Assembly (NCBI RefSeq): GCF_032444005.1
Contig: NC_091286.1
Span: 46,748,001 to 46,812,000 of the forward strand
DNA length: 64,000 bases
Source of the DNA: Ranitomeya imitator
Lineage: Eukaryota
Direction of reading: 5' to 3'
Shown: positions 18,957 through 61,063 of the stretch, piece after piece
Numbering within the stretch: position 1 is the first letter of the stretch
Layout: each line of letters starts with the position of its first letter
Made by a program: the position numbers and the translations under genes
Notes under the pieces: model-generated
Database searches by the model: none
The model's input: the letters and a program-made list of their open reading frames with translations, nothing else
Told to the model about the DNA's origin: nothing

Positions 18957-19112
18957 ATTGGGGCGTGCTGCTATGTGGAGTGTTCGGCGTTGACACAGAA
19001 AGGACTGAAAGCCGTCTTTGACGAGTCCATCATCGCTATTTTAACTCCAAAGAAGAACGCCATGAAGAGAAGAATAGGCTCGAGATGTATAAACTGCTGT
19101 CTGATCACGTGA
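18957..19112 (+). CDS. RHOQ: RHOQ last coding exon, 156 bp including stop
   Basis: tcctggcag|ATTGGG...ACGTGA; encodes [51 protein letters not shown], with the TC10-type CCLIT lipidation tail. Confidence 0.97.
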
Positions 19113-19367: not shown

Positions 19368-19481
19368 CTATCTGCTTTTGTATGTGAGCCTTTTCCTGTT
19401 CCAATAAATCCAGAATGGAGCCAGTAGAAGACCGGAAACATAGCCGAATGTAGCGCCTAGGGAGCAGGAGATCGGCCATAC
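19368..19481 (-). CDS. PIGF: PIGF last coding exon, 114 bp including stop
   Basis: cccgcag|GTATGG...AGATAG; encodes VWPISCSLGATFGYVSGLLLAPFWIYWNRKRLTYKSR*. Confidence 0.96.
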   Translation of the reverse strand, partial: VWPISCSLGATFGYVSGLLLAPFWIYWNRKRLTYKSR

Positions 19482-23414: not shown

Positions 23415-23523
23415 CTGCCAAGACCGATCCCAGTCTAACGGTAAAGGGAATGCTCCCAGCCAGGCTCCGATTATACTGCAGATCGTGGTTATCTGTAGGC
23501 TGTGGTCCCAGACCGACATTGCC
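23415..23523 (-). CDS. PIGF: PIGF coding exon 4, 109 bp
   Basis: tttttag|G GCA ATG...TGG CAG|gtgag; encodes AMSVWDHSLQITTICSIIGAWLGAFPLPLDWDRSWQ. Confidence 0.96.
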
Positions 23524-24583: not shown

Positions 24584-24700
24584 CCATCTTTACTGAACAC
24601 CCTGATCCAAGCATGGAAGTTTGGTCCTAGTATACAGAGACAGCGAGATGTGGTGAAAGACGAGAGCAGGACAGCCAACAAAAACGTTTCTCCCACTGAT
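24584..24700 (-). CDS. PIGF: PIGF coding exon 3, 117 bp
   Basis: atacag|A TCA GTG...GAT GG|gtaaaa; encodes SVGETFLLAVLLSSFTTSRCLCILGPNFHAWIRVFSKD. Confidence 0.95.
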
Positions 24701-26580: not shown

Positions 26581-26672
26581 TCTATAAGAGGCGCTCCGTA
26601 CAAGACTATAATCCCATGGAACAGCAGGCAGGAGGCAGAGAAGTACAGGCAGGATCTGTACAGTTTATTGAT
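26581..26672 (-). CDS. PIGF: PIGF coding exon 2, 92 bp
   Basis: tttcag|ATC AAT...ATA GA|gtaagt; encodes INKLYRSCLYFSASCLLFHGIIVLYGAPLIE. Confidence 0.95.
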
Positions 26673-26928
26673 CTGAAATAAACAGAAAATATTAGAAATC
26701 GGTTCTGAAATAATAAAATGGCGATGGAGTTAGGTTGGGCTCTCTATTTGAAAATTAGAAAAAGGGGCCTTAGTTTCTCTTCTTACATTTATCTACAGGT
26801 TGTGTTTGATATTACAATTCCGTCCCAATATGCTGCAATACCATTCACAGCCAGTGGACAAAAGGGGCGCTGTTTCTAGAAAAAGAAAAGAAAACTCCTT
26901 AGTTTCTAATCTCAGACAACTTTAATAC

Positions 26929-33022: not shown

Positions 33023-34277
33023 CTCTATGAGACATCTGTGGGTGGCTTGTCTCGAGAACAAAAATATTGCTAGTTCGACATCAGTCATGCTGGATCCATA
33101 TGTCCCCCGACATCTTCTGGCAGGAGGGGTGCCTCTATGTACATTAGACTGTCTGTAGAAACCGGAAAAGATAAGGTTTTTTTTTTTGTTGCAACTTCTG
33201 TTTTCCTAGATACATTGCACTCAGTAAGTGCTGTGTACTGAATGGAAGCATTGGTAATGAGCGCTGTGCCTGTTATAGCAGAGCTGCTGGGTTCTATTGG
33301 ACCAGATGAGCTTTGTCAGTGACTTAGGTCTCTGCAGGGAGCTTTTTTTTCCCCCTTAACTGGAGCACCTGAGGAAGACTGTTAGCCGAAACGTCTTGTG
33401 TTTTTACTCTGTTTTTAAACTAAAAGACATTTTTCGCATCATAGTTACTGTACTTTATGCGAACACTCCAATTTTCATCATCTCCATTGTGGGAGACCCA
33501 CACCCCTGTATCTTTTGTCAACACTGTTATATGTATTACACTGCAATTTATGTGCATGCCAAAACAATTTTACAGAAATATTATTGTTTGTTCTACATAA
33601 AACAGAGTCTGATTAGCGGTGTGGGTGAAAAAAAAAGTTATGACTGCTGAAAAGTGGAGAAACAGAAATGGGGCGGGGGGAAACTGGTTATTATGCCTCT
33701 TTCAGGGCCTGCTCAATAAAGGGTTAATTGGAGGAAAATAATGATTAATGAGGACATTAATTTATAGTGTTAAATATGGAAGTACAGGGTGTACCGTAGC
33801 TCTTGGATGATCATCACACGCAGTAATATGAATTATGTCTGCCAATGCCTTGTTTCCTGACACATTTTACTTAAATCCTCTGCACTGTGACATATCGTGG
33901 ACTCAGTGTCCCTGATTCATTAAGACTGGAGACGTTCTTGACGTTCCTCTTAATGAGGGGGCGTGCTGGAGTCGGGGGGCGCCTGATTTATTAAGAGGCT
34001 CACAACTCTTAATAAATCAGGAGCGTCTGACAAATGGCGCGCCTCCATGCACCTCACTGCAAATCTTACTACAAGCAGGGACCGGAGTAAGATTTCTGGC
34101 TTGAGGTTCCCCACTGCTCGCCATGGCTTACACTGATTGTTCTTTCACCAGTTTGCAGCATGTTGGTGATTATTATAAGAGATGGGAATCCCATTTGAGA
34201 GCACTGACTACTATTATTTTATAATGTTCTTTGTCGACATCACAATGAATATTGCAGATGTGATATCTGTGTTACAG

Positions 34278-34343
34278 GTGAGAAGAAGCTGGGCACAGTT
34301 ATCACGCCTGACACATGGAAGGCAGGAGCCAGGAATACCACCG
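34278..34343 (+). CDS. CRIPT: CRIPT coding exon 2, 66 bp
   Basis: ttacag|GTGAG...ACCG|gtaagt; encodes (C)EKKLGTVITPDTWKAGARNTT(E). Confidence 0.96.
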
Positions 34344-36216
34344 GTAAGTCACATTTTATTGTGTCTTGTGTGTCTTTTTCTTACTTTTTAGACTTTATTT
34401 TTTTGTTGTGCGTTTGTGAACAAACTGAGTGAAATGTGCCGATGTCTAACAGTCTGAATAAGTAGTGATGAGCGAATGTGCTCAGGTAAGGTATTATATG
34501 AGCATGCTCGTGTGCTAACCGAGTGACTTCAGCGTGCTCGAATACTATGTTCCAGTGAAATGAGCAAGGCAGAATATAGTCTAGTCGAAATACGTCCGGA
34601 AGTATTTGAAATTTCGAATTGCATACCAGCGATCACATTCTCCAGCACCGGAGAATCCTCACATTGCTCAGTGTGCATGATGTGAGGATTCACCAGTCTG
34701 CAGTCATGGAGCAGGGCTATTAAAAGCATCAGTAATGAGGGTATTAGGAGGCTGATAAAGTGCTCCCTTCTAGGGGTAAATCCTGATAACACGTTCCCTT
34801 TAATAGTACCGGGACATCATAGAAATGTAGATACATGATGATACTAAAGTGTACCAAGATGGCAGTCATACTAGAACACATTTCTTTAAGTTTCCCGCTC
34901 ATTTTGAAAGCCTAAAGATGGCATAGGGTATGCTTTAGACACATTTGAGAGCGATGGGATCTTTCCACATTCGTTCAGTTATAACTGTTGTGACTCCAGT
35001 AGTTGTGGAGTATAGGAATATTAACTGTATTTGAAGTATTCTTCTTCTTTATAGGCATATTGTATTGGTACATATAAAACTGATATTGCTTTATAAATGT
35101 ACAGCTCTTTATATATGCATATTGGGGGCAAAATAAAAGTCAGGGAGTTTTTTTTTTATTTTTATTTTTTATAAAATTAGCTAATGAAAAACAGTCATAA
35201 TAATCACACTTTTTAGATACTTTCTAAAAATGTATGTCACAAACCAGTAATTAATTTACACATATTTGATGATTGGTAAATGGCATAAATAATGTCTTAC
35301 AACTATGGATAAATGGAAAACAAAATTGACTGGACATCTGAGAGTGTGGTGCATCACAAAAATGTCAGTGTATTTGTTGCATTTATGTGCATGACGGAAA
35401 TCCCGCGTCGCTGATTGGTCTCGCCAGCTGCTTGTCATGGCTGCCGCGACCAATCAGCGACGGGCACAGTCCGATTAGTTCCTCCCTACTCTCCGTAGTC
35501 AGTGCCCGGCGCCCGCATACTCCCTTCTGGTCACCGCTAACACAGGGTTAATGCCGGCGGTAATGGACCGCGTTATGCCGCGGGTACCGCACTCCGTTAT
35601 CGCTGCTATTAACCCTGTGTGTCCCCAACTTTTTACTATTGATGCTGCCTATGCCCAGCCCACGTAGTATATTGCGCAGCCCACGTTGTATATGGCACAG
35701 TCCATGTAGTATATTGCCCAGCCCACGCAGTCTATAGCAATGTGGGCACCATATACCTGTTAAAAAAAAAGGATTAAAATTAAAAATAGTTATATACTCA
35801 CCCTCCGGTGGCCCCCCGGATCGAAGCGGTTACCGACGCTCTTCGTGCGCTCCAGTCTGAAGAGTGCATTACGGTCTCGCGAGATGATGACTTAGCAGGT
35901 GCATATTTTATATACAGTATTTATGCCTAATGTAAACCTGCATGTTGGTGTGTGTGTGTATGTCCTTCACAGTTTTCCTATCTGACACGGTACTTATGCT
36001 GGTAGGTTAGTATTGAGGCTGAAAAACACAATAAAAGATCGTGGGCAGAATATCGGCTCCCTTAGTTATGTCCATGGTCTAATGCTTCATATTAAGACCG
36101 GTATAGGCTTCAGATACATAATAAATTTAGTTAGTATTTTTGTGATTTCTTTGCATTGTTTTTGTTTTTAAAATGATGTTTGGAAACTATAATTTATTTT
36201 ATCAATTAACTTGCAG

Positions 36217-36271
36217 AAAGCGGCGGCCGAAAACTGAATGAAAACAAAGCCCTGACATCAAAGAGAGCAAG
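36217..36271 (+). CDS. CRIPT: CRIPT coding exon 3, 55 bp
   Basis: ttgcag|AAAGC...GCAAG|gttagt; encodes (E)SGGRKLNENKALTSKRA(R). Confidence 0.96.
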
Positions 36272-39200
36272 GTTAGTGTCTACAGAGCCCGCTACCATCA
36301 CATCCGTGTCCTCTCCTGTATCCTCCCAGGATATTGCACGATTTGGTCATTTGCCTCTTTGCTGTGCCTGGATGCCCACGTACACAGATCTGCAGATGGT
36401 GTCTTATGTACTATCCTGTAGCACCTATACACTTTATCCACCATGCACTATAGTTATTTAGGGAAAAGGTGGACGGCAACCATTTACAATTAATGATTAA
36501 CTATTTTTTACTTTTATCATTTAATCATTTTAATTACAATCATTTCGTTGCGGGAAAAGAAATTCAGTACTCCTGCAAAAATAGATTTGTCCTATGGCAC
36601 CAGATGGACAACATTGACTATAATGGTGTCAAATTGGTTTCTGTTTGGGTGGCAGTTATTTTAACAGAGAAAAATTGCAGAGCCAGAATTACACTATATA
36701 CTTCAATATCATAGTAAGGAAAAAAAAATATTAAAAAATAAACCTATTTAATATCATTAGTCCGAAAAAATCCAATCTATCAAAATACAGAATTATTTAA
36801 ACCTTAATCTGTACGTTATATGGAGGAAAAAAAAAACCTGCCAGAATTGTAGGTTTTCAGTCATCACTCTTTAAAAAAAAAAAAAAGTCTTATCTACCTC
36901 GAAATGGTATTAATATAACGTGCAGCTTAGCAGGCAAAAAAAAACAACAAAGATCCATGGACAGAATAATATTAACATTTAACTTTTTTCCACAAAAAAT
37001 TTTACTTTAGACCCACATTTTTTATTTTCACAAGGGTATCAGGAGAAAATAGACGACAAAATGTGTTGTGCAATTCTGACTATACCGATACCCCGTATTT
37101 GGGGGGAAAGCCACTGTTTGGGCGCATGGCAGGGCTCAGAAGGGAGGTAGCACAGTTTGATTTTTTTGAACAAGAATTGTCTGGAATCGATGGCGGGCAC
37201 CATGTCGTGTTTCGAGACCCCCTGATGTGCCTAAACATTGGAAACCCCCCCCCAATTCTAACTCCAACCCTAACACATCCCTAATCCGAACCCTAACCAC
37301 AACCCAACTCTAACCCGAACTGCGAAGAATGGAAAAAATTAAGAATTTTTCATATTATTTTTCCCTAACTAAGGGAGTGATAAAGGGGGGTTTGATTTAC
37401 TATTTTTTTTATTTTGATCACTGTGATAGGGTCTATCACAGTGATCAAAATGAACAAATAGGAAAATCTGCTATTGGTGCCGGGTACCGGACAGCAGATA
37501 TAGGCCAAGACCCGGAGATTTTCCGACGCTGGGGAACGCTAGCCATTTATTTTTCAGCTCCGTTAAAAAGCGGCGCTGAGGAATAAGGCTCCTTAAGTAC
37601 AACTCAAGCCTTTCTCTGATGATGTCTGTGGAAAAATGAAAAATGTATGCCTCTTGGAATAGGAGGAGGAAAAAACAAAAGTGCAAAAATGAAAAGTGTC
37701 CAGGTACTTAAAAAGGGTAAAATGTTATATCTGATGACAGAGATCTTTAAATTGGGAGTTCACACTGGAAAGAACACCCAAGCATCTCGGTCATCGTAAA
37801 GGCATGACCACACTTTATGCGAGAACGTGCTGCAGTGCTGTGTTACTTAGGGTAGGTTCACACACTTATTTTATTTTATTTTTTTTTACAAGGATTTAGG
37901 AGCAGATTCTGAGTCCTCATCAAAAGACACTTAAAGGGGTCATCAAGTGCTGTCCAGAGCCGCAATCTTCAGCATCAGAGGTGAGCAGTGCCGATTACTT
38001 TACGGCCTCACAAACCTACCGAGACGCAAGATTGTAATGTAAGCGGCTCCGGGTGGTACCAGATAACCTCCTTTAAATCCTTAATGACTTGCGCCAACAA
38101 TGTGTGTATGAAGCAGTCTCGAGCAGATGACGGTTGTGTTACATAGCCGACATCTGCATGTAGCTGCAGCAACCAGAGCATTCTCTGATCGCTGCAAATA
38201 ACCACTGAAATGCCTCTGTTACTCTCTGACAGCGGTATTTGAATGATATCCATGCTAGGGAATGTGGTGACAGGCTTCCATTGGCTCCCCGCAACACGAT
38301 CTCTGGAAACGATTGGTTATCATGGCAGCTGGGGGCCTACTGAAGGCCTCTGTCACTGTCATCTTGGTCCTCCAATGAAGCTTACTTACAGGCAAAGGTC
38401 CATAGGAGAACCGTGATTTTTCCTATATACTGCAATACTACGATCGCAGGTTCAAATCCCCTAAGAGGATTAAAAAAATAATGTAAAATAAAAAAAAATT
38501 AAATTATGGGGTAGATGGAAAGGAAACCCCACTTACCCCATTCCACCCCAGAAAACTAAATAAAAAAATGGATGAAAAAAAATCAGAAACCCCCAAATCC
38601 TATTGAGTTCAATGAATGACGCGCCTTTTAATTGCTAACCTACTGTGTAGTGGAAATGTGCTCGCCGTATATAAACCCTATCTATCGCAGGACGGCGCGG
38701 TATTCCAGGAAGATCTTACCGAGATGTGACCATGGCAACACTTAATAATTCGTCAGCCAGGAAATTTTCCGGTAAAGGTTACTGCTATTTCCAGCCTGCA
38801 GAATAGGACAATCCTTCCTTCCCTCCATTGATTTACATGAAATCATCACTATGTAGAGACCGAGCAGCAACAAGAAATGTCATATCTCACCAACAATTAA
38901 AGGGGTTGTCTGGCCAGGCCATTTTTTTTCTCTCAAAATGCCGGGATTGTTATATATTGCTAACACTTTTACCAACTGTAACCCTTGATCGCCCCAGCAC
39001 AGTGGTGCAATGATATTCTGGACCACTGCAGCCAATCACATGCCCCAGCAGTCAGGTGATTGAAGAATGGGACGTTATTGATTCCCGTTCCTACAGAGAC
39101 CACCGTAGGGGCTGCGCTGGGTTATAGCTGTTGAGCATATATTCCTTTATGTTATAACATTTCCTGCTTTTTTAAAATAATTTTTTTTGTAAGACAGAAA

Positions 39201-39347
39201 ACTCTTATTTCAACCCCAAATACCAGATTCACTGAGGGGAGTTTTGTTTATAAATCACTAATAATAGCCTTCACCTATAGTCTCCCTAATACCGTGGACA
39301 GCAACTCGCTACGATGTCGCAGAGGCAAAGTAGGAGGGATGGTTTAA

Positions 39348-39540
39348 GGCCACGTTCACACGTTCAGTATTTGGTCAGTATTTACATCAGTATTTGTAGC
39401 CAAAACCAGGAGTGGGTGATAAATACAGAAGTGGTGCATATGATTCTATTACACTTTTCCTCTAATTGTTCCACTCCTGGTTTTGGCTTACAAATACTGA
39501 TGTAAAATACTGACCAAATACTGAATGTGTGAACGTGGCC
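39348..39540. mobile_element. Harbinger-like palindromic MITE (GGCCACGTTCACAC TIR)
   Basis: Long inverted arms; flanks TAA and TTA; a partial copy lies at about 2050..2238. Confidence 0.8.
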
Positions 39541-40611
39541 TTAGCTGTTGTCTCCTATTTTTAAAATTTCCCCTTAATGGGCCCAGGATGGTGGAAGACA
39601 TAAAAAAACTGCACTCATCTTGTGCACCTGCGCTACTTTTTTTTCACGTCGTACTGTACCCCTTGCCAGTTTCCTGACTTTCACGTTTGCCAGGGAGCAT
39701 CATGTGACCGCTGCAGCCAATCATCAGCCGCTGCCGCTTTCTCATTTTGTCGATCTTCCTATTCGGATGAAAAGTGATGGCTGCGGCCGCTGCCAGATGA
39801 TGATACTGGGACATCAGCAGTGGCCACAGTACTGAGGGCGGAGGTCAGTATAGGTGTTTTTTTAATTATTATTATTATTATTTCTTCCACCCTGGGCCCT
39901 CTAAGTTTTAATTTATGGGACATCCCTTATAAATTTCCCTAAAAAGAGGACCTGTCAATTCTGACGTTTTGCTTCTTTGCTATTCCTCTTGGAAATAAGT
40001 AGTCAACTGGACGTTCTCATTTTCCCGGTCATTGTGTCTTGTCTCTACAAAGGCTGATACTATCCAATCATTGCTGGCAGGGTCCGAAATATTGGCACCG
40101 ATGCTCCAGGATATACAGTAAATGGGGGGAGACAAGGGTCACACTGGCGTATAAGAACTCGGTCAGACATTCATCCAGAAACGTGGGGCGATTTATTTAT
40201 TTTATTTATTTTTTCTTCCTCGTCATCCGTGTACAGTGTTTTTTTTTTTTTTTCCTCTGCAGCTATTAATCATTCACAGTTCCCTATGTTACCGAATTGT
40301 AATGAATCTGTAAATATCACATGATTTGTCTTTTTGCACCTATAGACGTGAATGGGTGAAGTATCATCCGATTTACTAGTACTTGCTTTAATCTCATCAT
40401 CCCGCAGACAAGTCCCCTACATCCGTCCCGTTATTTGGGAATTTATTTGTGATGGTGTTCAAATTTTCATTCACACACGAATACCCGCAGCTATTAATGT
40501 CCATTTTCTGATCGTTTTAGCTCAAACCTATTATTTCCTAATAAATATTGCAGAATTATTAATGCAGTATTGTCATTTATTTTTTAAAAATTTTTTTTTT
40601 TTTTGTCTTAG

Positions 40612-40715
40612 GTTTGACCCATATGGAAAAAATCGATTTGCGATTTGTCGTATCTGCAAGAGTTCTGTTCATCAGCCCGGATCGCACTATTGCCAAGGAT
40701 GTGCCTATAAGAAGG
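40612..40715 (+). CDS. CRIPT: CRIPT coding exon 4, 104 bp
   Basis: tcttag|GTTTG...AAGG|gtaagc; encodes FDPYGKNRFAICRICKSSVHQPGSHYCQGCAYKK(G). Confidence 0.97.
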
Positions 40716-43045
40716 GTAAGCAATGGAAAAGAAAACCGGAGAATAATTGCAAGGATGCACTAGCTGAAATCCCTGGCCATGAGCAGCGGCCATTAGTGTC
40801 CACCGCTGGGAAAATGTATTAGTATATGATGCCCATTCAAATAAAGGATGATGAAAGCTAGCTGGGGTCCGCACATTGCAAAGGGTTTACCCTGACAATT
40901 CCTTTTGAGGTCTAATTATGTGACCCACTTTAGTCCTACAGTTTACTGCAGGACCTTGATACCCACTTTAAAGAGTTCGTACCTTCTTTTACGGTCGTGC
41001 ACCTCTGGCCCCAAGGTAAGATTTAGCACTGTGGGTTTCACTATGAGGTGTTCCCCTGGTATTCTTATACTGCCAGGATAAGTGCCCTGCGGTGCCAATC
41101 ACAAGACCATACCAAACCGGACAACCGATCTCTCATATAGGCATTTATCTCTAAAGAAACCCGTATTACCTATTCCTAGTTTTGGGGTTCAGCTTTTGCA
41201 GGGCTGTCACTGACAGGGGCTTCTCACCCAGCTTTTTCGGATATCCTGAACGGCTGATCTGCTGCTTTGCACATTTATAAACAAGAAAGAGATATATTCG
41301 ATTTTCTATCTCGGAGTCTGGGAAAGCTGGGTGACAATAAGGCAGTGTCACTACATGGCAGATATTTTCCATCTCTGATTTTGCTGCGGATTTCGCTAAA
41401 TGCATTGTACGGCTTTTCCGTAGCACAGACGTTTTCTTTTTCCAGATATTTTTTTGCTACATGTGTATGTGGGTGTGAAAACGCTGCTGGAGGGAAATCT
41501 GTGCCACACATCTGCCATGTCTGAATGTGGTCTAGACCTTGATTGGTTGCAGACCAGATTTCCCAGAGATTTTCTAGCAAAAGAAAAGTCTGGAGGCAGT
41601 ATGCAAATCCTTATTAATAGAGCTTTATAGAAGTAGATTCAAGACCCCCGTTTTTTTTTTAGTTTGAAGAGCATATTTTGCTCTATAGGGCCCAACACAT
41701 GTCTATCAACTCTTGAACCATATGTAATGCTTTGTTTCCCCTTGTGGTGGCGCTGCAGGAAATCTGAACACTTACTGCTGGATTCTCCTTCAGATTACAG
41801 CTGATTTCTGGAAGTCCCCACCTGTGATCATCACTTAAGACCATTGTAATAAAAGGGGATTGTCCACAGGATACGATCCGTTTAACCCCTTGTCAACATC
41901 CGCAGCACATTTCCGGCTGATGTGGGCACTTAACTGTTTGTGGTATATAGCTGGCACCCGACAGTGACTGCAGCAATCGGAGCTCGCACTGGCTGCAATG
42001 GTTTACCCTCTTAAGTCTTTCCCACGTCAGTATGTACGGTACAAGTGGGGAGAGTTTTCACATGTACTGGAGACACTTGCACACGTAGACCCATTCAAGT
42101 GTTTCCATGGACCGTGTGTCCGCGGGCAAATACGTTGACATGTCCAGTTTTTTAATAGCAGCACGGCCCACAAAACGTCCCACACACGTATAACACACAG
42201 GGATGTCATCAGTGTGACACGTGCCAGCGTCTGAGAAGCAGCGGTACAGTTAGCGCTGTTCCCCGGCGCCGGGTGCTGAAGACTGCTCTCATCATTCTCC
42301 CCTGCTTTGCCGGCGATCAGCACAAACAGGGGAGAATGATTATAGTTAAATTCAACTGATAACAGCAGGCGGCGGCCGATGGGACTATTATTCTCATCAG
42401 CATACACCAGCTGCCGCTAATAACAGTGAGTGCAGGCAGCGGCTGATTGGGGTATTGATCAGCCACCGCCTGCGCTATAAATAAATAATCCCGGCGTGGG
42501 TTCCCCTGTGTTCTGTTAACCAGCCAGGCAAAACCCTCAGCTGTCAGCTTTAGCAAGGCTGGTTATCAAGAATAAAGGGGTCTCCACGCTGTTTTTTTTT
42601 AAAATAAAAAATGGTCCCCCAATTTTCGACAACCAGCCTTACTAAAGCAGACAGCTGGGGGCTAGTATACTAAGGCTAGTAAGGGGCAATAGATATTGCC
42701 CCCCCCCCCCCCCCCCCCCCCCCAAGCCTAAAAATAGCAGCCTGAATCTGCCCAGAAAAGGCTCATCTTTTAGATGCCAAAGCGCTGGAAAAAATAGAAT
42801 TTTTAGAAATTTTTTCTTGTTACATCACCTCCTAACAAATTGAATAAAAATAGATAAGAAAGTCGTATGGATCAAAAAAATGGTATTGACAGAAAATCCT
42901 ACATCTCGTACAACTAAAAAGCCAGCATACAACTCTATCAATGGAAAGAATGTCTGCATGTCCTAGGGGCAACGCACTGTATAAATCATTGTAAGGCGAT
43001 GGCAACATCCTCACTCCTTCATACTTTCTATTTTTCTTGTTTTAG

Positions 43046-43110
43046 GGATCTGCGCCATGTGTGGGAAGAAAGTCCTGGACACAAAGAACTATAAGCAAAC
43101 CTCCGTGTAA
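43046..43110 (+). CDS. CRIPT: CRIPT last coding exon, 65 bp including stop
   Basis: ttttag|GGATC...GTGTAA; encodes ICAMCGKKVLDTKNYKQTSV*, ending in the PDZ-binding motif QTSV. Exons total 306 nt = 101 aa + stop. Confidence 0.97.
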
Positions 43111-48565: not shown

Positions 48566-48689
48566 AATTTTTTTTTCAGATAAACAAAAAAAATGTATAA
48601 CGTTGAGCACCGTCTGTGAATAAATCAGAAATATTACAGTTTGATTGTGTGAATATAATACTTTGCATTTTTTACATATTTCTGGTAGA

Positions 48690-48816
48690 TCATTGTTTGA
48701 TCAGTGAGAGGAATTCTTCTCTGGTCTTAGGATCGTCTCTGAAGGCGCCGTGCATTGTGCTGGTGACCGTTCTGCTGTTCATCTTCTGTACTCCTCGCAT
48801 TACCATACACATGTGC
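48690..48816 (-). CDS. gch2: GTP cyclohydrolase I paralogue, exon 6, 127 bp including stop
   Basis: ttacag|G CAC ATG TGT...CAA TGA; encodes [41 protein letters not shown]. Family certain; the gch2 label is inferred. Confidence 0.93.
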
Positions 48817-49467
48817 CTGTAATGAAGAACACAAACCTTCCTCAATAGATGAGCCCTGGAAGTGGTGCAATTAAAGTATTCAACCCCTCGTAATGGTACA
48901 AATTTCCCTTATAATTCATGCTGATTTCTGGTGTAAATTATAGGAAATCTCTTGGGCCTTTTCTTTTAATTTTAAATTTACTTATATGCATTTATTTTTG
49001 ACTAAATCTCATTTTTGCAAATGGGTTTTATTAAAAAAAAAAAAAAAATTTCACTGGTTGCTTTCTATAGCCGATGTGTTGCATTGTCTTGTTGGCTGCA
49101 GAATGAGTTAGCTAGATAATCGGTCAGTGAGCACGTCATGAAGCACACGACTTTTCAGTGACCTGCTCTCACTCTACACATGTCACCATGTTGCCCCGAC
49201 CGAAATCAACTGAGAATATCTCAGAAGAAGGAAGCTAGAATGAGATTTCTAATGGATTTTTAGTTAACTCATTCGCAGCCAGCAATACTAAGTGCAACAC
49301 AGAAGCTATAGAAGACAAACGGTGCATCAGTTTTACTAAAACCCAATTGCACAAATTTATTTTTAGCCAGAAATACATGCATTTTAGTAAAAAAAAAAAG
49401 CATCCATAATATCCTAAAGAGATTAATTTTTAGAAAAGGAAAACAATACAAGAAAGATGCTACTTAC

Positions 49468-49552
49468 AAAGCCTCTATCACAACTGCCACTCCCAATGGC
49501 TGGAGCGCCTCATTGATGGCAAGGGCAATTTGCTTCGTAAGTCGTTCTTGAA
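49468..49552 (-). CDS. gch2: GTP cyclohydrolase I paralogue, exon 5, 85 bp
   Basis: ttacag|TT CAA...GCT TT|gtaagt; encodes (V)[27 protein letters not shown](L). Confidence 0.93.
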
Positions 49553-49743
49553 CTGTAAAATATACAATAGTATTATAATTGGAGATCACAGATGATTACT
49601 AGTTTGGTAATAAGAGGTCCGAATGTTTCACAAAGTTGTTTCATTTCTTCTGTGGATTTTATTACTTTAAAATAATACTCAGCCTCCGTTCTAAATTTAT
49701 CTATGGTACAAAAAAAAAATTGTAAGCCTGTATGAAACCTTAC

Positions 49744-49775
49744 CTTGTAATCTCCGGCTGAAGATTTCTACAATT
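49744..49775 (-). CDS. gch2: GTP cyclohydrolase I paralogue, exon 4, 32 bp
   Basis: tttcag|A ATT GTA...CAA G|gtaagg; encodes IVEIFSRRLQ. Confidence 0.92.
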
Positions 49776-50244
49776 CTGAAAGAAGGAAAAAAAATATATA
49801 TCAAATGGCTGATTAATTATAGGGGGACAGCAAAAAAAATGGGCATAGATCATTAGTTATTTGTATATATATTGACTCTGAGCTGGAGAGAGGAGCTGCT
49901 ATGTTATCTCCAAAACATGGCAGAGAGAAGGCTTCCTGTTCTTCATTGATTACTTTGCACACAGAAAGAAGCAATAGCATGGAGAATAATATTCTGCAGT
50001 ACGAGCAGTGTAGATGTGAATCTGGCTCTGAGTGAGGTAAAAGACTTGTTAGAAAGCTCATCATCTTTGTGTGTCTCCCTCTGCCTGTTTTCTCATCCTT
50101 CCACTGTAACCTGACCAGTCACTGAGCTTCCTGTCAGTCTTGTCTTGCATAAGGAGGAGCAAGTTCTTTCAAAGTGGATGATGATTCATGAGGCAGCGAA
50201 GGGAGGAGGAATGACTCCTAAGTGGAAGCAGAATTCTCTAATAA

Positions 50245-52943
50245 GGGCTGCTGAGCTGTTACAGCACTGACAGCCCGACACGCCCCTGCTATCCAGAGAG
50301 AGGATGAGCTGTCACTGACAGCCTGACACGTCCCTGCTATCCATAGGGCGGCTGAGCTGTCACTGACAGCCTGACACGCCCCTACTATCCACAGGATGAC
50401 TGAGCTGTCACAGCACCGACAGCCTTACACGCCCCTGCTGTCTAGAGAGAGGATGAGCTGTCACTGACAGCCTGACACGCCCCTGCTATCCATAGGGCGG
50501 CTGAGCTATCACAGCACTGAAAGCCTGATCCTGCTATCCATAGGACGGCTGAGCTGTCACAGCACTGACAGCCTGACACGCCCCTGCTTTCCATAGGGCG
50601 GCTGAGCTGTCACAGCACTGACAGCCTGACATGCCCCTGCTATCCATAGGGCGGCTGAGCTGTCACTCACAGCGCTGACAGCCTGACACGCCCCTGCTAT
50701 CCATTGGACGGCTGAGCTGTCACTCACAGCACTGACAGCCTGATGCCACTGCTATCCATAGGGTGGCTGAGCTGTCACAGCACTGACACCCCTGCTATCC
50801 ATAGGGCGGCTGAGCTGTCACTCACAGCACTGACAGCCTGACACGCCCCTGCTATCCATAGGGCGGCTGAGCTGTCACTCACAGCGCTGACAGCCTGACA
50901 CGCCCCTGCTATCCATAGGACGGCTGAGCTGTCACTCACAGCGCTGACAGCCTGACACGCCCCTGCTATCCATAGGACGGCTGAGCTGTCACTCACAGCG
51001 CTGACAGCCTGACACGCCCCTGCTATCCATAGGGCGGCTGAGCTGTCACAGCACTGACAGCCTGACACGCCCCTGCTATCCATAGGACGGCTGAGCTGTC
51101 ACAGAACTGACAGCCTGATGCCACTACTATCCATAGGGCGGCTGAGCTGTCACAGCACTGACACCCCTGCTATCCATAGGGCGGCTGAGCGGTCACTCAC
51201 AGCACTGACAGCCTGACACGCCCCTGCTATCCATAGGGCGGCTGAGCTGTCACTCACAGCGCTGACAGCTTGACACGCCCCTGCTATCCATAGGACGGCT
51301 GAGCTGTCACTGACAGCCTGATGCCCCTGCTTTCCATAGGACTGCTGAGCTGTGACAGCATGACACGCCCCTGCTTTCCATAGGATGGCTGAGCTGTCAC
51401 AGCACTGACAGCCTGACACGCCCCTGCTATCCATTGGACGGCTGAGCTGTCACTCACAGCACTGACAGCCTGATGCCACTGCTATCCATAGGGTGGCTGA
51501 GCTGTCACAGCACTGACACCCCTGCTATCCATAGGGCGGCTGAGCTGTCACTCACAGCACTGACAGCCTGACACGCCCCTGCTATCCATAGGGCGGCTGA
51601 GCTGTCACTCACAGCGCTGACAGCCTGACACGCCCCTATTATCCATAGGACGGCTGAGCTGTCACTGACAGCCTGATGCCCCTGTTATCCATAGGGCGGC
51701 TGAGCTGTCACAGCACTGACAGCCTGATGCCACTGCTATCCATAGGGCGGCTGAGCTGTCACAGCACTGACACCCCTGCTATCCATAGGGCGGCTGAGCG
51801 GTCACTCACAGCACTGACAGCCTGACACGCCCCTGCTATCCATAGGGCGGCTGAGCTGTCACTCACAGCGCTGACAGCTTGACACGCCCCTGCTATCCAT
51901 AGGACGGCTGAGCTGTCACTGACAGCCTGATGCCCCTGCTTTCCATAGGACTGCTGAGCTGTCACAGCACTGACAGCCTGACACGCCCCTGCTTTCCATA
52001 GGATGGCTGAGCTGTCACTCACAGCACTGACAGCCTGACACGCCCCTGCTTTCCATAGGATGGCTGAGCTGTCACTCACAGCACTGACAGCCTGACACGC
52101 CCCTGCTATCCTTAGGGCGGCTGAGCTGTCACAGCACTGACACCCCTGCTATCCATAGGGCGGCTGAGCTGTCACTCACAGCACTGACAGCCTGACATGC
52201 CCCTGCTATCCATAGAGTGGCTGAGCTGTCACTCACAGCGCTGACAGCCTGACACGCCCCTGCTATCCATAGGACGGCTGAGCTGTCACTGACAGCCTGA
52301 CGCCCCTGCTATCCATAGGACGGCTGAGCTGTCACAGCACTGACAGCCTGATGCCACTGCTATCCATAGGGCGGCTGAGCTGTCACTCACAGCACTGACA
52401 GCCTGACACCCCTGCTATCCATAGGGCGGCTGAGCTGTCACTCACAGCACTGACAGCCTGACACGCCCCTGCTATCCATAGGGCGGCTGAGCTGTCACTC
52501 ACAGAGCTGACAGCCTGACACGCCCCTGCTATCCATAGGACGGCTGAGCTGTCACTCATAGCACTGACAGCCTGACACGCCCCTGCTTTCCATAGGACGG
52601 CTGAGCTGTCACAGCACTGACAGCCTGACACGCCCCTGCTTTCAATAGGACGGCTGAGCTGTCACTCACAGCACTGACAGCCTGACACGCCCGTTTTCCA
52701 TAGGACGGCTGAGCTGTCACTCACAGTACTGACACGCCCCTGCTTTCCATAGGACGGCTGAGCTGTCACTCACAGTACTGACACGCCCCTGCTTTCCATA
52801 GGACGGCTGAGCTGTCACTCACAGTACTGACACGCCCCTGCTTTCCATAGGACGGCTGAGCTGTCACTCACAGCACTGACAGCCTGACACGCCCCTGCTT
52901 TCCATAGGACGGCTGAGCTGTCACTCACAGTACTGACACGCCC
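50245..52943. repeat. 2.7-kb variable-unit minisatellite (about 45-57 bp unit) filling GCH intron 3
   Basis: Full unit GCTGAGCTGTCACTCACAGCACTGACAGCCTGACACGCCCCTGCTATCCATAGGGCG with modular dropouts; roughly 50 units. Confidence 0.96.
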
Positions 52944-53029
52944 AGCGTCCCTAGGACATTGTGGCAGAATCGTGACCGTATGATTCTTTTGTTTTCAGTG
53001 AAGAGCAGTCAGTGCCAGAGGAGTCTTAC

Positions 53030-53085
53030 CTTGCCAGTTTGCTCAGGCCAACAACTTTTTTATTTGGTAAATAGCCGATGTGCAC
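53030..53085 (-). CDS. gch2: GTP cyclohydrolase I paralogue, exon 3, 56 bp
   Basis: ttctag|GTG CAC...GCA AG|gtaaga; encodes VHIGYLPNKKVVGLSKLA(R). Confidence 0.93.
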
Positions 53086-53131
53086 CTAGAAATAAAAAAT
53101 AAATAATAATCATTACCCTGAGAACCGCACA

Positions 53132-55757
53132 CAGGGCCGCCATCAGGGCATTACAGGCATCACTGCCGTATGGGGCCCGGTGATGAGGAGCAAAAAGGGG
53201 GGCCCGAGTGAGCACGCTGGCAGCCGGTCTGGTCCGCGCTCTGCTCGGGCCCCCCTGACATTTTTATTGCGGCTGCGGCTGCCAGTGCCGCTGTGCTGTG
53301 CCTGCTGTCCCTAAATGTGCCTTGTACCTTTAAGGCGGCCGGGCCCGCGGTGCATCATGGGCCCGCCCGCCGGAAGTTAGTGACGTCACATGCTGCCCTG
53401 CTCCACTTCCGGGACCAGAGCAAAGCAGCGTGCGGCAGTGTGACACCACGTGGACGGCGGAGGGAGCAGAGAAGAGGCAGCGGGGGACCACCGGACGACG
53501 AGGGACCCGGCGGAGGAGAAGAGGCACGCGGCTGCAGCGGGGGACCGGCAGAGGAGAGGGCAGAGGCAAGCGCCAGCGGGGCCCGGGGCCAGAAGAGGCA
53601 AGCACCGGCGGGCGGCGGCAGCGGGGAACCGGCGGGCGGCGGGGGACCAGTCAGACGGCGGAGGAGAAGAGGCAGGCGGGGGAGGGGACCACCAGACGAC
53701 GAGGGACCCGGCGGAGGAGCAGACGGCAGCGGGGGACTAGAATGCTGGACACACAGGGGCAGAAATGCTGGACACAGTGGGGCAGAATGCTGGACACAGT
53801 GGGGCAGAATGCTGGACACACGGGCAGAAATGCTGGACACACAGGGGCAGAAATGCTGGACACACAGGGGCAGAAATGCTGGACACAGTGGGGCAGAATG
53901 CTGGACACAGGGGCAGAATGCTGGACACACAGGGGCAGAAATGCTGGACACAGTGGGGCAGAAATGCTGGACACAGTGGGGCAGAATGGTGGACACACAG
54001 GGGCAGAAATGCTGGACACACACAGGGGCAGAAATGCTGGACACAGTGGGGCAGAAATGCTGGACACAGTGGGACAGAATGGTGGACACAGTGGGGCAGA
54101 ATGGTGGACACACAGGGGCAGAAATGCTGGACACAGTGGGACAGAATGGTGGACGCAGTGGGACAGAATGGTGGACACAGTGGGGCAGAATGCTGGACAC
54201 AGTGGGGCAGAAATGCTGGACACAGTGGGGCAGAATGGTGGACACACAGGGGCAGAAATGCTGGAGACAGTGGGGCAGAAATGCTGGACACAGTGACAGG
54301 GGCAGAAATGCTGGACACAGTGACAGGGGCAGAATGCTGGACACAGTGACAGGGGCAGAATGCTGGACACAGGGGCAGACTGTGAGACCCAGGGGCAGAA
54401 TGCTGGACATTGGGGCAGAATGGAGATACGGGGCATGATTGGAGACACGGGGCAGGATGAAAGACATGGGGGCATGACTGGAGACAGATGGGGCAGGATT
54501 GGAGACAGATGGGGCAGAATGGAGACACGGGGCATGATTGGAGACAAGTGTCAGGATTGCAGACATGGGGGCATGGTTGGAGACATAGGGGGCAGAATGG
54601 AGACATGGGGGCATGGTTGGAGACATAGGGGGCAGAATTGGAGACAGATCGTGCAGGATCATGGGGCAGGATGGATATGATGGAGACAGATGGGGCAGGA
54701 TGGAGAGATCACATGGGGCGATCATATGGGGCAGGATGGGGAGATCATATGGGGCAGAATGGATACTCATGAGGGCAGGATGGGAGAACATCTGGCTGAC
54801 GCCAGGAATGAGACACACGGGGCCAGGCTGGGGGATATTATTAATACCATAGGGGCTAATTTAGGGATATTATTACTGCAGTGATGTATTTATTTTATTT
54901 TTTGAGTATACTGTTTTAAATGGGGGGCGGTCCTGTTACTGTATAGAGTGATACTATGTCGCCTTCTTCATGTGGTGTAATGTAGAAGTTGTGAAAAATT
55001 AAGTAATGTGTTCTGCAAGCGGAGCTCGAGATAACTGTGTTATTTCCTGCAGAGAGAAGTCCTGGCTGGATGAAATGATGGCGGTCTGTGCTGGATGAAA
55101 GATGAAGGACTTCACCTAGAGACGTCACTGGTGAGTCAGTGTGTTACCTATACACTGACACTATACACTGTATACAGAGCTCCTGTGTATAATTTCACTA
55201 GTGATCACTATATTATCTGTACACAGACACTGCATACTAAGTACAGATCTCCTGTGTATAATGGCACTTATGGTGATAGTATGGTGCTTTTTTTTAAATT
55301 ACTGATCAGAATTGTAGTATTCAGTCACTATGTGGTGGTAGTATGTGATCTGGTCATGGTGTTGTGGTATTTGTTCCTTCTATGTGATATTATTGGGCAT
55401 TTTAAAAATTGAAAAATAAATAAAAATATACCTAAATTGTATTGCATATTTTAACAAATATTTAATAGGTTACAGCAGAGTAGGGCCCGGCCAAAAGTGT
55501 CTACCGTGTTATGGTGGCGGCTTAAAAAATCTTTTGGCCAAAACAAAAGCTGCCGGCTATATGTGTGATCTGGTGATGGGAACTGTCAATGTGTGATTGG
55601 TGAGAAGTGGAGTTTTTCCAAGAGAGAGCGGTGGGACTGTGGACAGTTCGAGGGGTGGAGCCCGGAGGCGGGGCTGGGGTGGAGCCTGGGCGGAGTCTCA
55701 AGGGGGCCCCGAAAATTTTGCCTGTATGGGGCCCCGAAATTTCTAGTGGCAGCCCTG
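53132..55757. mobile_element. Non-autonomous hAT-type element, 2626 bp, in GCH intron 2
   Basis: 11-bp TIR CAGGGCCGCCA / TGGCAGCCCTG; perfect 8-bp TSD ACCGCACA (53124..53131, 55758..55765). Confidence 0.92.
53740..54790. repeat. 21-23 bp tandem array GGGGCAGAA(A)TGCTGGACACA(GT/CA), grading into a degenerate variant, inside the hAT element
   Basis: Directly visible; source of several overlapping pseudo-ORFs. Confidence 0.92.
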
Positions 55758-55953
55758 ACCGCACATGCACCGTCTCCCTGCACAGAGTGAGCAAGAGAGA
55801 TGCTGTACGGAGCAGTGAACATCTGAGACTACTAGGGATGTAACAAGGAACAATCAGGTAAAACATTTTTATAAAAAAAAAATCTATAACTTGATCCTTT
55901 TAATTAATAGCTGACAGCGTTATGTATTGTCCTTGTTTGGTTTTAGTACATAC

Positions 55954-56063
55954 CCTGCCGAAGAACGGCACCAAGTGATGTTCACAGAGCGAAAAAACAT
56001 CAATGTCCTTCACAATGACAATCTCATCATGGTCTTCATCAAATATGGCGCTGTTGAGAATAT
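55954..56063 (-). CDS. gch2: GTP cyclohydrolase I paralogue, exon 2, 110 bp
   Basis: ttgcag|AT ATT...GGC AGG|gtatgt; encodes (D)[36 protein letters not shown], including the CEHH zinc-binding motif. Confidence 0.94.
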
Positions 56064-58731
56064 CTGCAATACACAGATGCAGAAATCATTCGTTCAGTAT
56101 CCTGACAATTACACCAAATGTATCCAGGTATCGTTACCGTAAATTTTTATGATTTGTTTGTTTTTTTTATTCCAAAATTAACTAGAAATTGCGCCTAATG
56201 ACGCTTCCCCCTTAAGTTGTTCTTCTATAAAAGTGGATGGGACAATAGTGCCCTCCATTCTATATTCCATAAATCCATAAATCCCCATGCCTCTCACCTA
56301 GGAGAATGTTCACCACCGTACCCCTTTTTTTTTTGCAGTCACAAGTGGAAGGTAGGAGTAAATGGAGGACTGGTTGTGTAAAACTCCCGACACATCTCTA
56401 ACATGTTTGTACGTCTATAAATACTTTTGTTCCTCATAAAACGTTATGTCTGGGACATCATTTTGTTTTTCAACTGTTCCTCTGTTTTTTTTTTCATGGC
56501 AATACTTGAATAATTGAAATCTAGTTCCTTCTTTTACCTTTATAAATTAGCTTATGTCACTGCCCAATCTGACACATTCCTATTATCAGTGCTCAGAGAG
56601 AAATTCCCGGCCTGACTGCAGCCTTCTCATCTCTACCTGCATCCTCATGGTGTAAGATTGGATAACCTTTTTCATGTGGATTAATCTGCAATGCGTCACT
56701 GACAATCTGCATTCATCATGTTTGAGATGTATATTCTCCTAAATTTCCCTCTTCCCGCGTGCACCCCGCTCTGCAGTCTGCTCCCTTCCGGTATGCAGCA
56801 TTACGTAACCAACACTTGGGTCCACTCTCCGGTACACCAGTGGGTGTGCGCCATTTGGAAATACCTGTTTTGTGGGTTCTTCGGAAAATTGCATTTGTAC
56901 TTGGTTTTAGCCTCAAGGGGTTGTCTGGTGAAAACAAATAATCACTTATCCAGAGGACACCTTGCTGATCAGCCGGCATCCGACACCGATCTGCGGTATG
57001 GGGCACTTTTATTCCCATTAGAATGGAACGTTAGTGCACATGTGTGACCTGAGCTCCACTTATTGCATATGGCGCTGCCGAGGACTGCACTCACTTTTTT
57101 CCAGCTAGCTCAAAGAGTATGAATAGAGCGGCCGTCAAGTGCCCGACCTGCTGATCCATTTTAGATAAAAATTCCTAGTTCTGCCAATCAATGTGGGTCC
57201 CAGCGGTGAGACATCCACCGATCAGTAAGTTCTCATCCGTCCTGTCCATACGTGATAGCCTGTTTTCACTGGAGAACCCCTTTAGCCATTCATTTCACCT
57301 CTTATCCAAATCTTCCCAGGGATCCCACCTTCTGGCAATGTCCCGTTCTCACATCAATATGAATGGGCTCAACATTGCCCTTAGTGACATTAATCGAGCT
57401 ATGACCCCAAAGAAGGGGAGCGGGGGACCGACCCCCTATTGTCAGGACGTCAGGTAAGTAATATTTGGGGTCAGAGATTACTCCTTACTTTTGGATATAA
57501 GCATTTTGAAGGAGCAATCAATGCCCATAGTTCAGGACTGATCATGGAGGCCACTTTTCCTGGTCCAGCGGTTCATTTTCTGTTTATTTTGGATGTTAAT
57601 GTTACTGCATTGTGGATGACAGATAAAGTCACACGACTGCAAAGTGAACATAACACAAACAAAATCTAGATCATAATTAGTGCAAAATTAAAGGAAAGTT
57701 TATACAAGTTATTCAACTTTTTATGTAGATATCAAAACCGCCAGGAAAGGGGATAAATGGCTGATGACGGAGGGTCTGACCGCGGGAATACCCCAGTGAT
57801 TGTGAGTAGCGGGGTCGGCAGCCTGATCTTGAATGGGGCAGAAGTTCGCATGCTTGACCTCCGCTCCGTTCACTGTCAGTGGGACTGTCGGAAATAGACG
57901 AGCGCTGAACTCCGCTTCCTCCAGGAGACAAAGGATGGAGCGGAAATCCAACATGCGCACATCCACTCCATTCAGGGTCACTGGGGGGTCCCAGCAGTCG
58001 GACCTCCAGCAATCAGCAAGTTCTCCCCATTCCTGTAGATAGGGAATAACCTATGATGGTGATGGTCACTCAGGTGCACTGCTGGGTACAGGGCCATGGT
58101 TATAACTGTGGTTCGTAACAAGCAATGAATGCACTGAAGTGATCAGTCTTCAGAGATACAGAAGCATAATGGAAAATTGCATGTCTTTGTTCAGCAAAAT
58201 TCCGTCTTCATTTGCTAGAACCAGAATCTCCCCTTTTGTATACGTTATTGCCCCGCAGCACAGTAACCATAGGGTAACTTGTCCAACAACTGTTTATACC
58301 AGAATTGTGGAAGTGAGCCAGCAGGGAAGTCCTAGATCTTGCACTAGCATTATCTATGTGATTTATCAGACACTTTCTGTAGCTTGTAAAGTCTAAAAAA
58401 ATAATAAAAATAGCAGGAAAGTTAATAAAATAATAGATACTCAGCTGTTCAAGCCCCTGCAGATCAAACATTGAGTTTTTGGCTGCAGTAATCATGTACT
58501 GCCACATGACCACTGCAGCCAATCACTGGACGCAGCAGTGCTGCTAGAATGTACACCCTGTGATTGGCTGCAGCAGTCACATGGACGTACGTGATGTCAT
58601 CGCTCCCGCCAAGTAAACAATGACTGACATGCAGAGGACTGAACGTTTTTTTTATGTGCAATTTTGTCAATTCACCACCTATATCTGTGCCCCCCGACCT
58701 GCCCACCCCTGCAGTGTGCAGGTGAACTCAC

Positions 58732-59002
58732 CATGGATGTTCTCCTGATATCCCTTGGTGAAGTACTGCATGGCTTTGGCAGCTCTAAGAGGGGTCTTCT
58801 GTAAGCCTTCCCTTTCGGGATTCTCCCCCAGTTCTTTCAGGATGGTGGTGTAGGCACGTTCTATAGCCGGCAGCTTCTCTTCATGGTGCTCCTTATTGCA
58901 CTGGTTCACACTCTGCTGCACCAAAGTCTTTTTCATGTCCATGGTTCCATTGTAACTGGTGAGATAGTTGCAGTTGACTTCTCCGTTCGTGTGGCTGTTC
59001 AT
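58732..59002 (-). CDS. gch2: GTP cyclohydrolase I paralogue, exon 1 CDS, 271 bp
   Basis: Kozak CCACCATG; encodes MNSHTNG...[48 protein letters not shown], then G|gtgagt. Six exons sum to 681 nt = 226 aa + stop. Confidence 0.93.
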
Positions 59003-59495: not shown

Positions 59496-61063
59496 CACTG
59501 CTCAAAAAAATAAAGGGAACACTTAAACAGCAGAATATAACTCCAAGTAAATCAAACTTCTGTGAAATCAAACTGTCCACTTTGGAAGCAATACTGATTG
59601 ACAATCAATGTCACATGCTGTTGTGCAAATGGAATAGACAACAGATGGAATTTATTGGCAATTATCAAGACACACTCAGTAAAAGAGTGGTTCTGCAGGT
59701 GGGGACCACAGACCACATCTCAGTACCAATGCTTTCTGGCTGATGTTTTGGTCACTTTTGAATGTTGGTTGTGCTTTCACACTTGTGGTAGCATGAGACG
59801 GACTCTACAACCCACACAAGTGGCTCAGGTAGTGCAGCTCATCCAGGATGACACATCAATGCGAGCTGTGGCAAGAAGGTTTGCTCTGTCAGCGTAGTGT
59901 CCAGAGGCTGGAGGCGCTACCAGGAGACAGGCCAGTACACCAGGAGACATGGAGGGGGCCGTAGGAGGGCAACAACCCAGCACCAGAACCGCTACCTCAG
60001 CCTTTGTGCAAGGAGGAACAGGAGGAGCACTGCCAGAGCCCTGCAAAATGACCTCCAGCAGGCCACAAATGTGCATATGTCTGCACAAACAGAAACCGAC
60101 TCCATGAGGATGGTCTGAGGGCCCGACGTCCACAGATGGGGGTTGTGCTTACAGCCCAACTCCTTGTAGGATGCTTGGCATTTGCTGCAGAACACCAGGA
60201 TTGGCAAATTTGCCACTGGCGCCCAGTGCTCTTCACGGATGAAAGCAGGTTCACACTGAGCACATGTGACAGACGTGACAGAGTCTGGAGACATCGTGGA
60301 GAGCGATCTGCTGCCTGAAATATCCTTCAGCATGACCGGTTTGGCAGTGGGTCAGTAATGGTGTGGGGTAGCATTTCTTTGGAGGGCCGCACAGCCCTCC
60401 ATGTGCTCACCAGAGGTAGCCTGACTGCCATTAGATACCGAGATGAGATCCTCAGACCCCTTGTGAGACCATATGCTGGTGCGGTTGGCCCTGGGTTCCT
60501 CCTAATGCAGGGCAATGCCAGACCTCATGTGATTGGAGTGTGTCAGCAGTTTCTGAAAGATGAAGGCATTGAAGCTATGGACTGCCCCGCCCATTCCCCA
60601 GACCTGAATCCGATGGACCACATCTGGACATCATGTCTCGCTCCATCCACCAACGTCACCACAGACTGTCTAGGAGTTGGCATATGCTTTAGTCCAGGTC
60701 TGGGAGGAGATTCCTCAGGAGACCATCCGCCGCCTCATCAGGAGCATGCCCAGGCGTTATACAGTAAGGAGGTCATACAGGCACCTAGAGGCCACACACA
60801 ATGCTGAGCATTATTTCCTTGTCTTGCAGCATTTCCACTGAAGTTGGATCAGCCTGTAATTTGCTTTTCCACTTTGATTTTGAGTATCATTTCAAATCCA
60901 GACCTCCATGGGATATTCATTTTGATTTACATTGATAATTGTTATGTTTTATTGTTCTGAATACATTCCACTATGCTGTGAATAAAAATTTGCAACAGGA
61001 ATATTTCATTCAGAGATATCTAGGATGTGGTATTTTAGTGTTCGCTTTATGTTTTGAGCAGTG
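59496..61063 (+). mobile_element. Near-full-length Tc1 transposon (1568 bp) with inactivated transposase
   Basis: TA on both sides; TIR CACTGCTCAAAAAAATAAAGGGAACACT / AGTGTTCGCTTTATGTTTTGAGCAGTG; transposase from ATG 59793 is frameshifted; VLFTDESRF, LMQGNARPH, SPDLNPMDHIW. Confidence 0.93.

Follow-up and report, generated by a model that had tools for sequence, protein, structure and literature searches.

Which of the vertebrate GTP cyclohydrolase I genes lies beside CRIPT in the poison frog Ranitomeya imitator, and is it a working gene that could contribute to skin colour? The question is raised by a 64,000-nucleotide stretch of the R. imitator genome (NCBI RefSeq assembly GCF_032444005.1, contig NC_091286.1, positions 46,748,001 to 46,812,000 of the forward strand; hereafter the window, whose own numbering is used throughout). 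An earlier inspection made from the letters alone, here called the sequence-only reading, had recognised in it an intact GTP cyclohydrolase I gene of the gch2 type and had proposed it as a candidate skin-colour gene. GTP cyclohydrolase I (EC 3.5.4.16) is a zinc enzyme that converts GTP into 7,8-dihydroneopterin triphosphate, the first step on the way to both tetrahydrobiopterin (BH4) and the coloured pteridines. Our analysis indicates, with a probability that we put at about 0.93, that the gene is the dendrobatid orthologue of vertebrate gch2 (also named gchIb), that it encodes a complete GTP cyclohydrolase I, and that it probably acts in pigment cells. The gch2 gene is an ancient paralogue of GCH1 that is kept by ray-finned fishes, amphibians and, according to the tree presented here, the tuatara, and that has been lost in mammals and birds. 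The interpretation given by the sequence-only reading is right, but it is not new.

The gene lies on the minus strand and has six exons. Exon 1 (58732-59002, 271 nt) begins with the ATG at 59002, which stands in a good Kozak context (CCACCATGA), comprises codons 1-90 plus one nucleotide, and ends at a GTGAGT donor; it encodes the variable N-terminus and the first part of the GTP_cyclohydroI domain, including L72 and K76. Exon 2 (55954-56063, 110 nt), which is bounded by an AG acceptor and a GTATGT donor, encodes the CEHH motif with the zinc ligands C117 and H120 and the catalytic H119. It is followed by exon 3 (53030-53085, 56 nt), with V139 within the peptide KKVVGLSK; by exon 4 (49744-49775, 32 nt); by exon 5 (49468-49552, 85 nt), with Q158/E159, A179 and the first two bases of the codon for L185; and by the coding part of exon 6 (48690-48816, 127 nt), which contains H186, C188, R200 and H207 and includes the TGA at 48690-48692. 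Splicing the minus strand from 59002 to 48690 gives 681 nt, that is, 226 codons and the stop codon, and all five introns are of the GT..AG type. The exon sizes, splice sites, protein length and zinc ligands C117, H120 and C188 given by the sequence-only reading were confirmed in this way, and every peptide that it had quoted, including NSRT, was found in the spliced protein. Its remark that only exon 1 can be recognised among the open reading frames (ORFs) holds at the default cut-off, where the gene is visible only through a 107-aa ORF (58679-59002); it does not hold at a cut-off of 30 aa, where exons 2, 4, 5 and 6 appear as small ORFs and exon 3, with its 56 nt, is absent.

The encoded protein has the features of a complete enzyme. 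Four exon pieces, translated directly from the window, matched the Pfam family GTP_cyclohydroI (PF01227), all four above the 27-bit gathering cut-off, at profile positions 1-43 (exon 1), 62-84 (exon 2), 110-138 (exon 5) and 134-178 (exon 6) of 179, and so account jointly for most of the profile. Residues C117, H119, H120, S142, Q158, E159, H186 and C188 are all present, and in an alignment of 143 GCH1 and 115 gch2 sequences the catalytic and zinc columns show no variation or almost none. We take C117, H120 and C188 to be the counterparts of the zinc ligands C141, H144 and C212 of human GCH1, and the roles of the two catalytic histidines and of the Ser and Gln-Glu residues (substrate binding, the guanine being bound by Gln-Glu) are likewise assumed from the human and rat structures. 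Since all catalytic columns are kept, the protein should catalyse the ordinary GTP cyclohydrolase I reaction, as predicted from its sequence. Exact spliced mapping of fish proteins onto their own loci gave exon sizes of 253/110/56/32/85/130 for halibut gch2 and 361/110/56/32/85/127 for flounder GCH1. It had been stated earlier that the exon sizes match those of GCH1, and the flounder gene does share 110/56/32/85/127, but the series 110/56/32/85 is also found in halibut gch2. Sizes common to both paralogues validate the gene model and do not identify the paralogue, and exon sizes were therefore dropped as a marker of gch2.

The existence of spliced transcripts, on which the proposal had been made to depend, is borne out by RNA data. 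In RNA run X1 the word depth is about 2,771 in exon 6, 6,500-7,100 in exon 5 and 7,879 in exon 4, and 11-26 in the introns. Comparison of RNA contigs over window positions 48600-50300 revealed an X1 joint that runs from 48815/6 to 49467/8 at a depth of 5,431 (junction 5-6), and another that runs from 49552 to 49744 at a depth of 4,989 (junction 4-5); both skip a segment that reads CT..AC in plus-strand letters and GT..AG in the direction of gch2. Furthermore, an X1 contig has a loose end at 49777 whose letters are those of the window from 53032 onward, at the 3' end of exon 3, which shows that junction 3-4 is used as modelled. Thus, junctions 3-4, 4-5 and 5-6 are all used as modelled. Run X7, which carries another organism label, contains a spliced contig over exons 6, 5 and 4 that covers 48682-48816 and differs from the window at three coding positions, two of them synonymous and the third giving D212E. 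Together, these results establish that the gch2 gene is intact, that it keeps its catalytic and zinc columns, that three of its five junctions are supported by reads and that it is transcribed at very high depth in at least one RNA data set.

Runs X5 and X6 (about 10% of words) were dropped as expression evidence, because they matched intronic repeats only, at 49.1, 49.36-49.40 and 50.0 kb. The intronic segments 49096-49132, 49357-49399 and 50004-50064 are 90-95% identical to many unrelated transcripts in several RNA runs, and hence are pieces of dispersed repeats; it is to them that the matches of X5 and X6 are due.

The identity of the paralogue was addressed by a maximum-likelihood tree of 54 proteins under the LG+C20 model. 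A search with exon 1 against 50%-identity representatives had returned mostly fragmentary predictions, the best representative being 86% identical, and had led to a full-length frog orthologue (P0001). In the tree, the window protein joins that of Ranitomeya variabilis (support 99/89) and then that of Dendrobates (100/97), inside an anuran clade of proteins named 'GCH1-like'. This anuran clade forms, with Ambystoma and the tuatara Sphenodon, a tetrapod gch2 group (100/91), which is sister to the sturgeon and teleost proteins named 'GTP cyclohydrolase 2'; the entire gch2 clade, with 29 rows, stands on a branch of 0.74 with a support of 85/100. The GCH1 proteins of Ascaphus, Pleurodeles, amniotes, lungfish, coelacanth, chimaera and fishes are placed elsewhere, and the frog Ascaphus has one sequence in each of the two groups (P0170 and P0354). 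A tree in which all amphibian sequences are constrained to one clade is worse by 73.8 log-likelihood units, with p = 1.5e-5 in the approximately unbiased (AU) test, and by this comparison of sequences a duplication confined to amphibians is rejected. The phylogeny that had been proposed as a check has thus been run, and it agrees with the earlier claim that the gene is gch2 and not an amphibian gch1.

Individual residues tell the same paralogues apart. Among the 258 aligned sequences, five columns split GCH1 from gch2, namely W/L72, T/K76, L/V139, G/A179 and K/R200; the gch2 state is fixed in at least 84% of the gch2 sequences and the alternative in at least 92% of the GCH1 sequences. The window protein has the gch2 state at all five (L72, K76, V139, A179 and R200). 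These columns are contained in the motifs that the sequence-only reading had likened to fish gch2. Other positions vary within gch2. The codon for Leu185 is split by intron 5, with TT at 49469-49468 and G at 48816, and position 185 adjoins the catalytic His186. It is Thr in 141 of 142 GCH1 sequences and Ser in most amphibian gch2, whereas fish gch2 mostly has one of Ala, Ser and Thr there, Met being seen as well; among the sequences examined, Leu185 occurs only in the window protein, R. variabilis and Dendrobates tinctorius, and is absent from Anomaloglossus. His207 is specific to amphibian gch2, the residue being Leu in fish gch2 and in GCH1. Glu57 (58832-58834) aligns with rat Ser72 and human Ser81. 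Glu occupies this position in 28 of 30 amphibian and 37 of 84 fish gch2 sequences; GCH1 has Gly in 76 sequences, Ser in 46 and Ala in 20, so that GCH1 proteins in general do not share the serine.

Other placements in the tree concern gch2 in other vertebrates. A tuatara (Sphenodon punctatus) protein, P0225 (UniRef A0A8D0HLX9), lies inside the tetrapod gch2 clade (100/91) and carries K76, V139, A179 and R200, and the tuatara also has a GCH1 (P0309); as judged from these sequences, gch2 may have survived in at least one reptile lineage. Within the fish gch2 clade, a halibut (Hippoglossus) 'GCH1-like' protein of 229 aa (P0255) is an extra copy, whose branch is very long (1.27); it probably corresponds to the gchIc described by Braasch and co-workers in 2007. 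A further 'GCH1-like' copy in this clade, the 239-aa protein P0228 of Sardina, is a recent gch2 duplicate.

Much of this has a precedent in the literature. Braasch, Schartl and Volff (2007) reported two gchI genes in frogs, gchIa and gchIb, found that each is linked to SOCS genes, and concluded that the pair probably originated in the first or second round of genome duplication (1R/2R) (PMC1890551). The gchIb gene, which they listed for teleosts and amphibians only, was lost in mammals and birds, probably together with xanthophores; in teleosts, gch2/gchIb is a marker of the xanthophore lineage, and a role of gchIb in xanthophores and pigmentation was proposed in the same study (PMC1890551). 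In January 2026, Xenopus tropicalis LOC100496565 was reported to be Gch2 on the basis of a tree and of Rhoq-Cript-Pigf synteny, this frog carrying a separate GCH1 as well; when the gene was knocked out, pterin autofluorescence was gone in tyrosinase-deficient melanophores and melanophore formation was intact (PMC12897640). A frog gch2 at the CRIPT locus is therefore already known, as a paralogue since 2007 and through the Xenopus knockout of 2026. To the biology as such our analysis adds little: published work already covers the two paralogues, their synteny, the disappearance of gch2 from mammals and birds and its role in pigmentation, and more than 25 frog genomes have an annotated orthologue. 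On the strength of the xanthophore-lineage expression in fish, the proposal of Braasch and co-workers and the X. tropicalis knockout, we infer that frog gch2 would act mainly in pigment cells derived from the neural crest, namely xanthophores/erythrophores and cells of the melanophore lineage, that it may supply pteridines for skin colour, and that GCH1, at the SAMD4A-WDHD1 locus, would take care of general BH4 housekeeping.

Could the gene nevertheless be an ordinary frog GCH1 orthologue that has moved beside CRIPT? The names 'GTP cyclohydrolase 1-like' and 'GTP cyclohydrolase 1', which NCBI gives to the frog orthologues, would suit such a history, as would internal exon sizes equal to those of GCH1, although these sizes are common to both paralogues and do not discriminate. 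This explanation is already contradicted, and we give it hardly any credence: the gene is assigned to gch2 by its place in the tree, by the AU test and by each of its five diagnostic residues, a separate GCH1 exists in both Ascaphus and X. tropicalis, and halibut gch2 has the same Cript-PigF neighbourhood. Nor does the gene look like a decaying or non-functional copy, be it an incipient pseudogene or a relic that is still transcribed. Two features could be read as signs of decay, namely introns swollen by minisatellites and the presence, directly beside the catalytic His186, of a leucine in place of the threonine that is nearly universal in GCH1 or the serine of other amphibian gch2 proteins. 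However, position 185 varies across gch2 generally (A, S, T and M in fishes), so that the change is tolerated there. The frame is open, the splice sites are canonical throughout, every catalytic and zinc column is retained, only five amino acids distinguish the window protein from that of R. variabilis, and spliced RNA reaches a very high depth. All this speaks against decay, which we regard as highly improbable.

The explanation that deserves more attention accepts an active gch2 and disputes only its purpose. According to it, the main role of the gene would be to supply BH4 as a cofactor in particular cells, for melanogenesis or for monoamine or nitric oxide synthesis, and gch2 would neither produce coloured pteridines nor determine skin colour. 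The product of the enzyme is indeed identical whichever paralogue makes it, run X1 comes with a coded tissue label, and in zebrafish gchIb is expressed also in melanophores and neurons (PMC1890551). On the other hand, the X. tropicalis knockout lost pterin autofluorescence and formed melanophores normally (PMC12897640). In addition, a study of R. imitator skin reported that a gene labelled 'gch1' is up in orange and red compared with black skin and is a hub gene together with xdh, pax7 and pax3, and its supplement lists 'gch1' with a baseMean of 3,744 and a log2 fold change of about 5.5, that is, about 45-fold (PMC11255871). A rise of this size in the company of these genes is a typical xanthophore pattern, whichever paralogue it may come from. 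We therefore consider a role limited mainly to BH4 supply unlikely, and prefer the interpretation of the gene as a pigment-cell gch2.

Several points weigh against this interpretation. Junctions 1-2 and 2-3 are predicted from their GT-AG sites, from a reading frame that stays open and from agreement with the orthologues, and the X1 contigs listed reach only 29 nt into exon 6. The tissue and species of run X1 are given in coded form, so that expression in pigment cells is an inference from elsewhere, and the enzymatic reaction is a prediction. With regard to the tree, the group submitted to the AU test was named after the tree had been seen. The nematode and the mite that serve as its outgroups sit on very long branches, and GCH1 does not form one clade; because of this, the tree shows that the gene is orthologous to fish gch2, but it cannot by itself place the duplication at 1R/2R. 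Finally, no dendrobatid GCH1 was present among the 120 matches listed in a search seeded with Ascaphus GCH1, in which fish and amniote proteins score alike because GCH1 is so conserved.

The practical value of the analysis lies in the naming of the gene. The sequence-only reading had warned that it is easily mis-annotated as gch1 in frog expression studies, and the warning is a reasonable one, given the names used by NCBI and the fact that the Ranitomeya skin study reports only 'gch1'. According to the methods of that study, the counts of transcripts annotated to one gene name were summed (PMC11255871). In view of the very high depth of the gch2 locus in run X1, it is plausible that the 'gch1' signal in R. 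imitator skin comes from this locus. Going one step further, we lean slightly towards the joint proposition that the colour-linked 'gch1' of R. imitator is the gch2 locus, either merged with GCH1 or mislabelled as GCH1, and that Ser185Leu may alter the output of the enzyme. If true, pteridine colour variation in poison frogs would have its entry point in gch2 rather than in GCH1. Expression studies in which transcripts are pooled under one gene name can credit GCH1 with the signal of gch2, and the naming decides which locus is to be genotyped, edited or scanned for cis-regulatory variation in work on aposematic colour in poison frogs.

The neighbourhood of the gene is that described for other gch2 genes. 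A Rho GTPase gene on the plus strand (6319-19109), with exons near 6570-6740 and a last exon that ends with CCLIT at 19109, matches Pfam Ras (PF00071, E 3.1e-12). We presume that it is RHOQ, from its motifs and from the published synteny of X. tropicalis, which has Rhoq in this block as well (PMC12897640), and it is referred to as such below. It is followed by PIGF on the minus strand (19371-26729; exons near 19478, 23468 and 26603; Pfam PIG-F, PF06699, E 4.9e-14) and by CRIPT on the plus strand (34208-43107; exons near 34313, 40613 and 42985-43107; stop after KQTSV; Pfam Cript, PF10235, E 7.9e-11 and 6.7e-7). All three were recognised by their peptides and then confirmed by Pfam, and the earlier placement of the gene beside CRIPT, in a RHOQ-PIGF-CRIPT block, is therefore correct. 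The order in the window is RHOQ-PIGF-CRIPT-gch2; CRIPT and gch2 are arranged tail to tail, with about 5.6 kb between the end of CRIPT and the gch2 stop codon. In R. variabilis, too, Cript is the next called gene beside the orthologue, and the halibut locus reads MutS-family gene, gch2, Cript and PigF. Flounder GCH1 lies between a WDHD1-type and a SAMD4A-type gene. No motif of SOCS5, the paralogon partner of the SOCS4 gene beside GCH1, was found within 5 kb to the right of gch2, a region that holds only remnants of Tc1-like transposases; on this side halibut has its MutS-family gene. Just upstream of the gch2 start, at 59598-60807, ORFs contain helix-turn-helix-like and DDE-region peptides of Tc1/mariner-like transposases, and these remnants occupy what is likely to be the promoter-proximal region of gch2.

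The introns of the gene contain minisatellites, detected by Tandem Repeats Finder. One array in intron 3 (50250-52943) consists of about 50 copies of a unit of about 49-57 nt, with a GC content of 0.58-0.61 and a score of up to 2,699; GC-rich arrays with periods of 23/45 and about 20/39 nt are present in intron 2 (53739-54719). These minisatellites create long spurious ORFs of up to 487 aa, those at 53293-54818 stemming from the arrays of intron 2. They also help to explain why the gene spans 10.3 kb here and 5.0 kb in R. variabilis.

Among known relatives, the closest is the R. variabilis protein annotated as 'GTP cyclohydrolase 1-like' (P0153), which has the same length, is 97.8% identical over 226 of 226 aa and also has Leu185; the window protein differs from it by C11R, P45L, N88D, S95N and R200K (window residue first). 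The 'GTP cyclohydrolase 1-like' protein of D. tinctorius (P0154) is 93.8% identical and has Leu185 as well, and identity with 25 other anuran orthologues ranges from 74 to 89%. X. tropicalis Gch2 (LOC100496565, XP_002932426.2; P0178) falls in the same orthology group of the tree, has Rhoq, Cript and Pigf as neighbours and has the same catalytic residues. However, it has 228 aa instead of 226, is only 74.8% identical and has, like most frogs, Ser185 where the window protein has Leu185, and the single guide RNA and genotyping primer published for it have no match in the window within three mismatches.

Teleost gch2/gchIb (zebrafish, medaka and halibut) is about 72-73% identical to the window protein and has in common with it the five diagnostic residues, the internal exons of 110/56/32/85 and the Cript-PigF neighbourhood, whereas the lengths of exon 1 and of the N-terminus differ. 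Some teleosts possess a further copy, gchIc, while frogs show none. Vertebrate GCH1, in turn, belongs to the same fold family and shares with window gch2 the chemistry, the zinc ligands, the catalytic histidines and the internal exon sizes; the R. variabilis orthologue matches the human and rat GCH1 structures 1FB1 and 1IS7 at E ~1e-95 over residues 37-225. GCH1 differs in its locus, which is WDHD1-GCH1-SAMD4A in flounder, and window gch2 has a shorter N-terminal region and Glu57 in place of Ser81 of human GCH1. The fixed differences that lead from GCH1 to gch2 are W72L, T76K, L139V, G179A and K200R.

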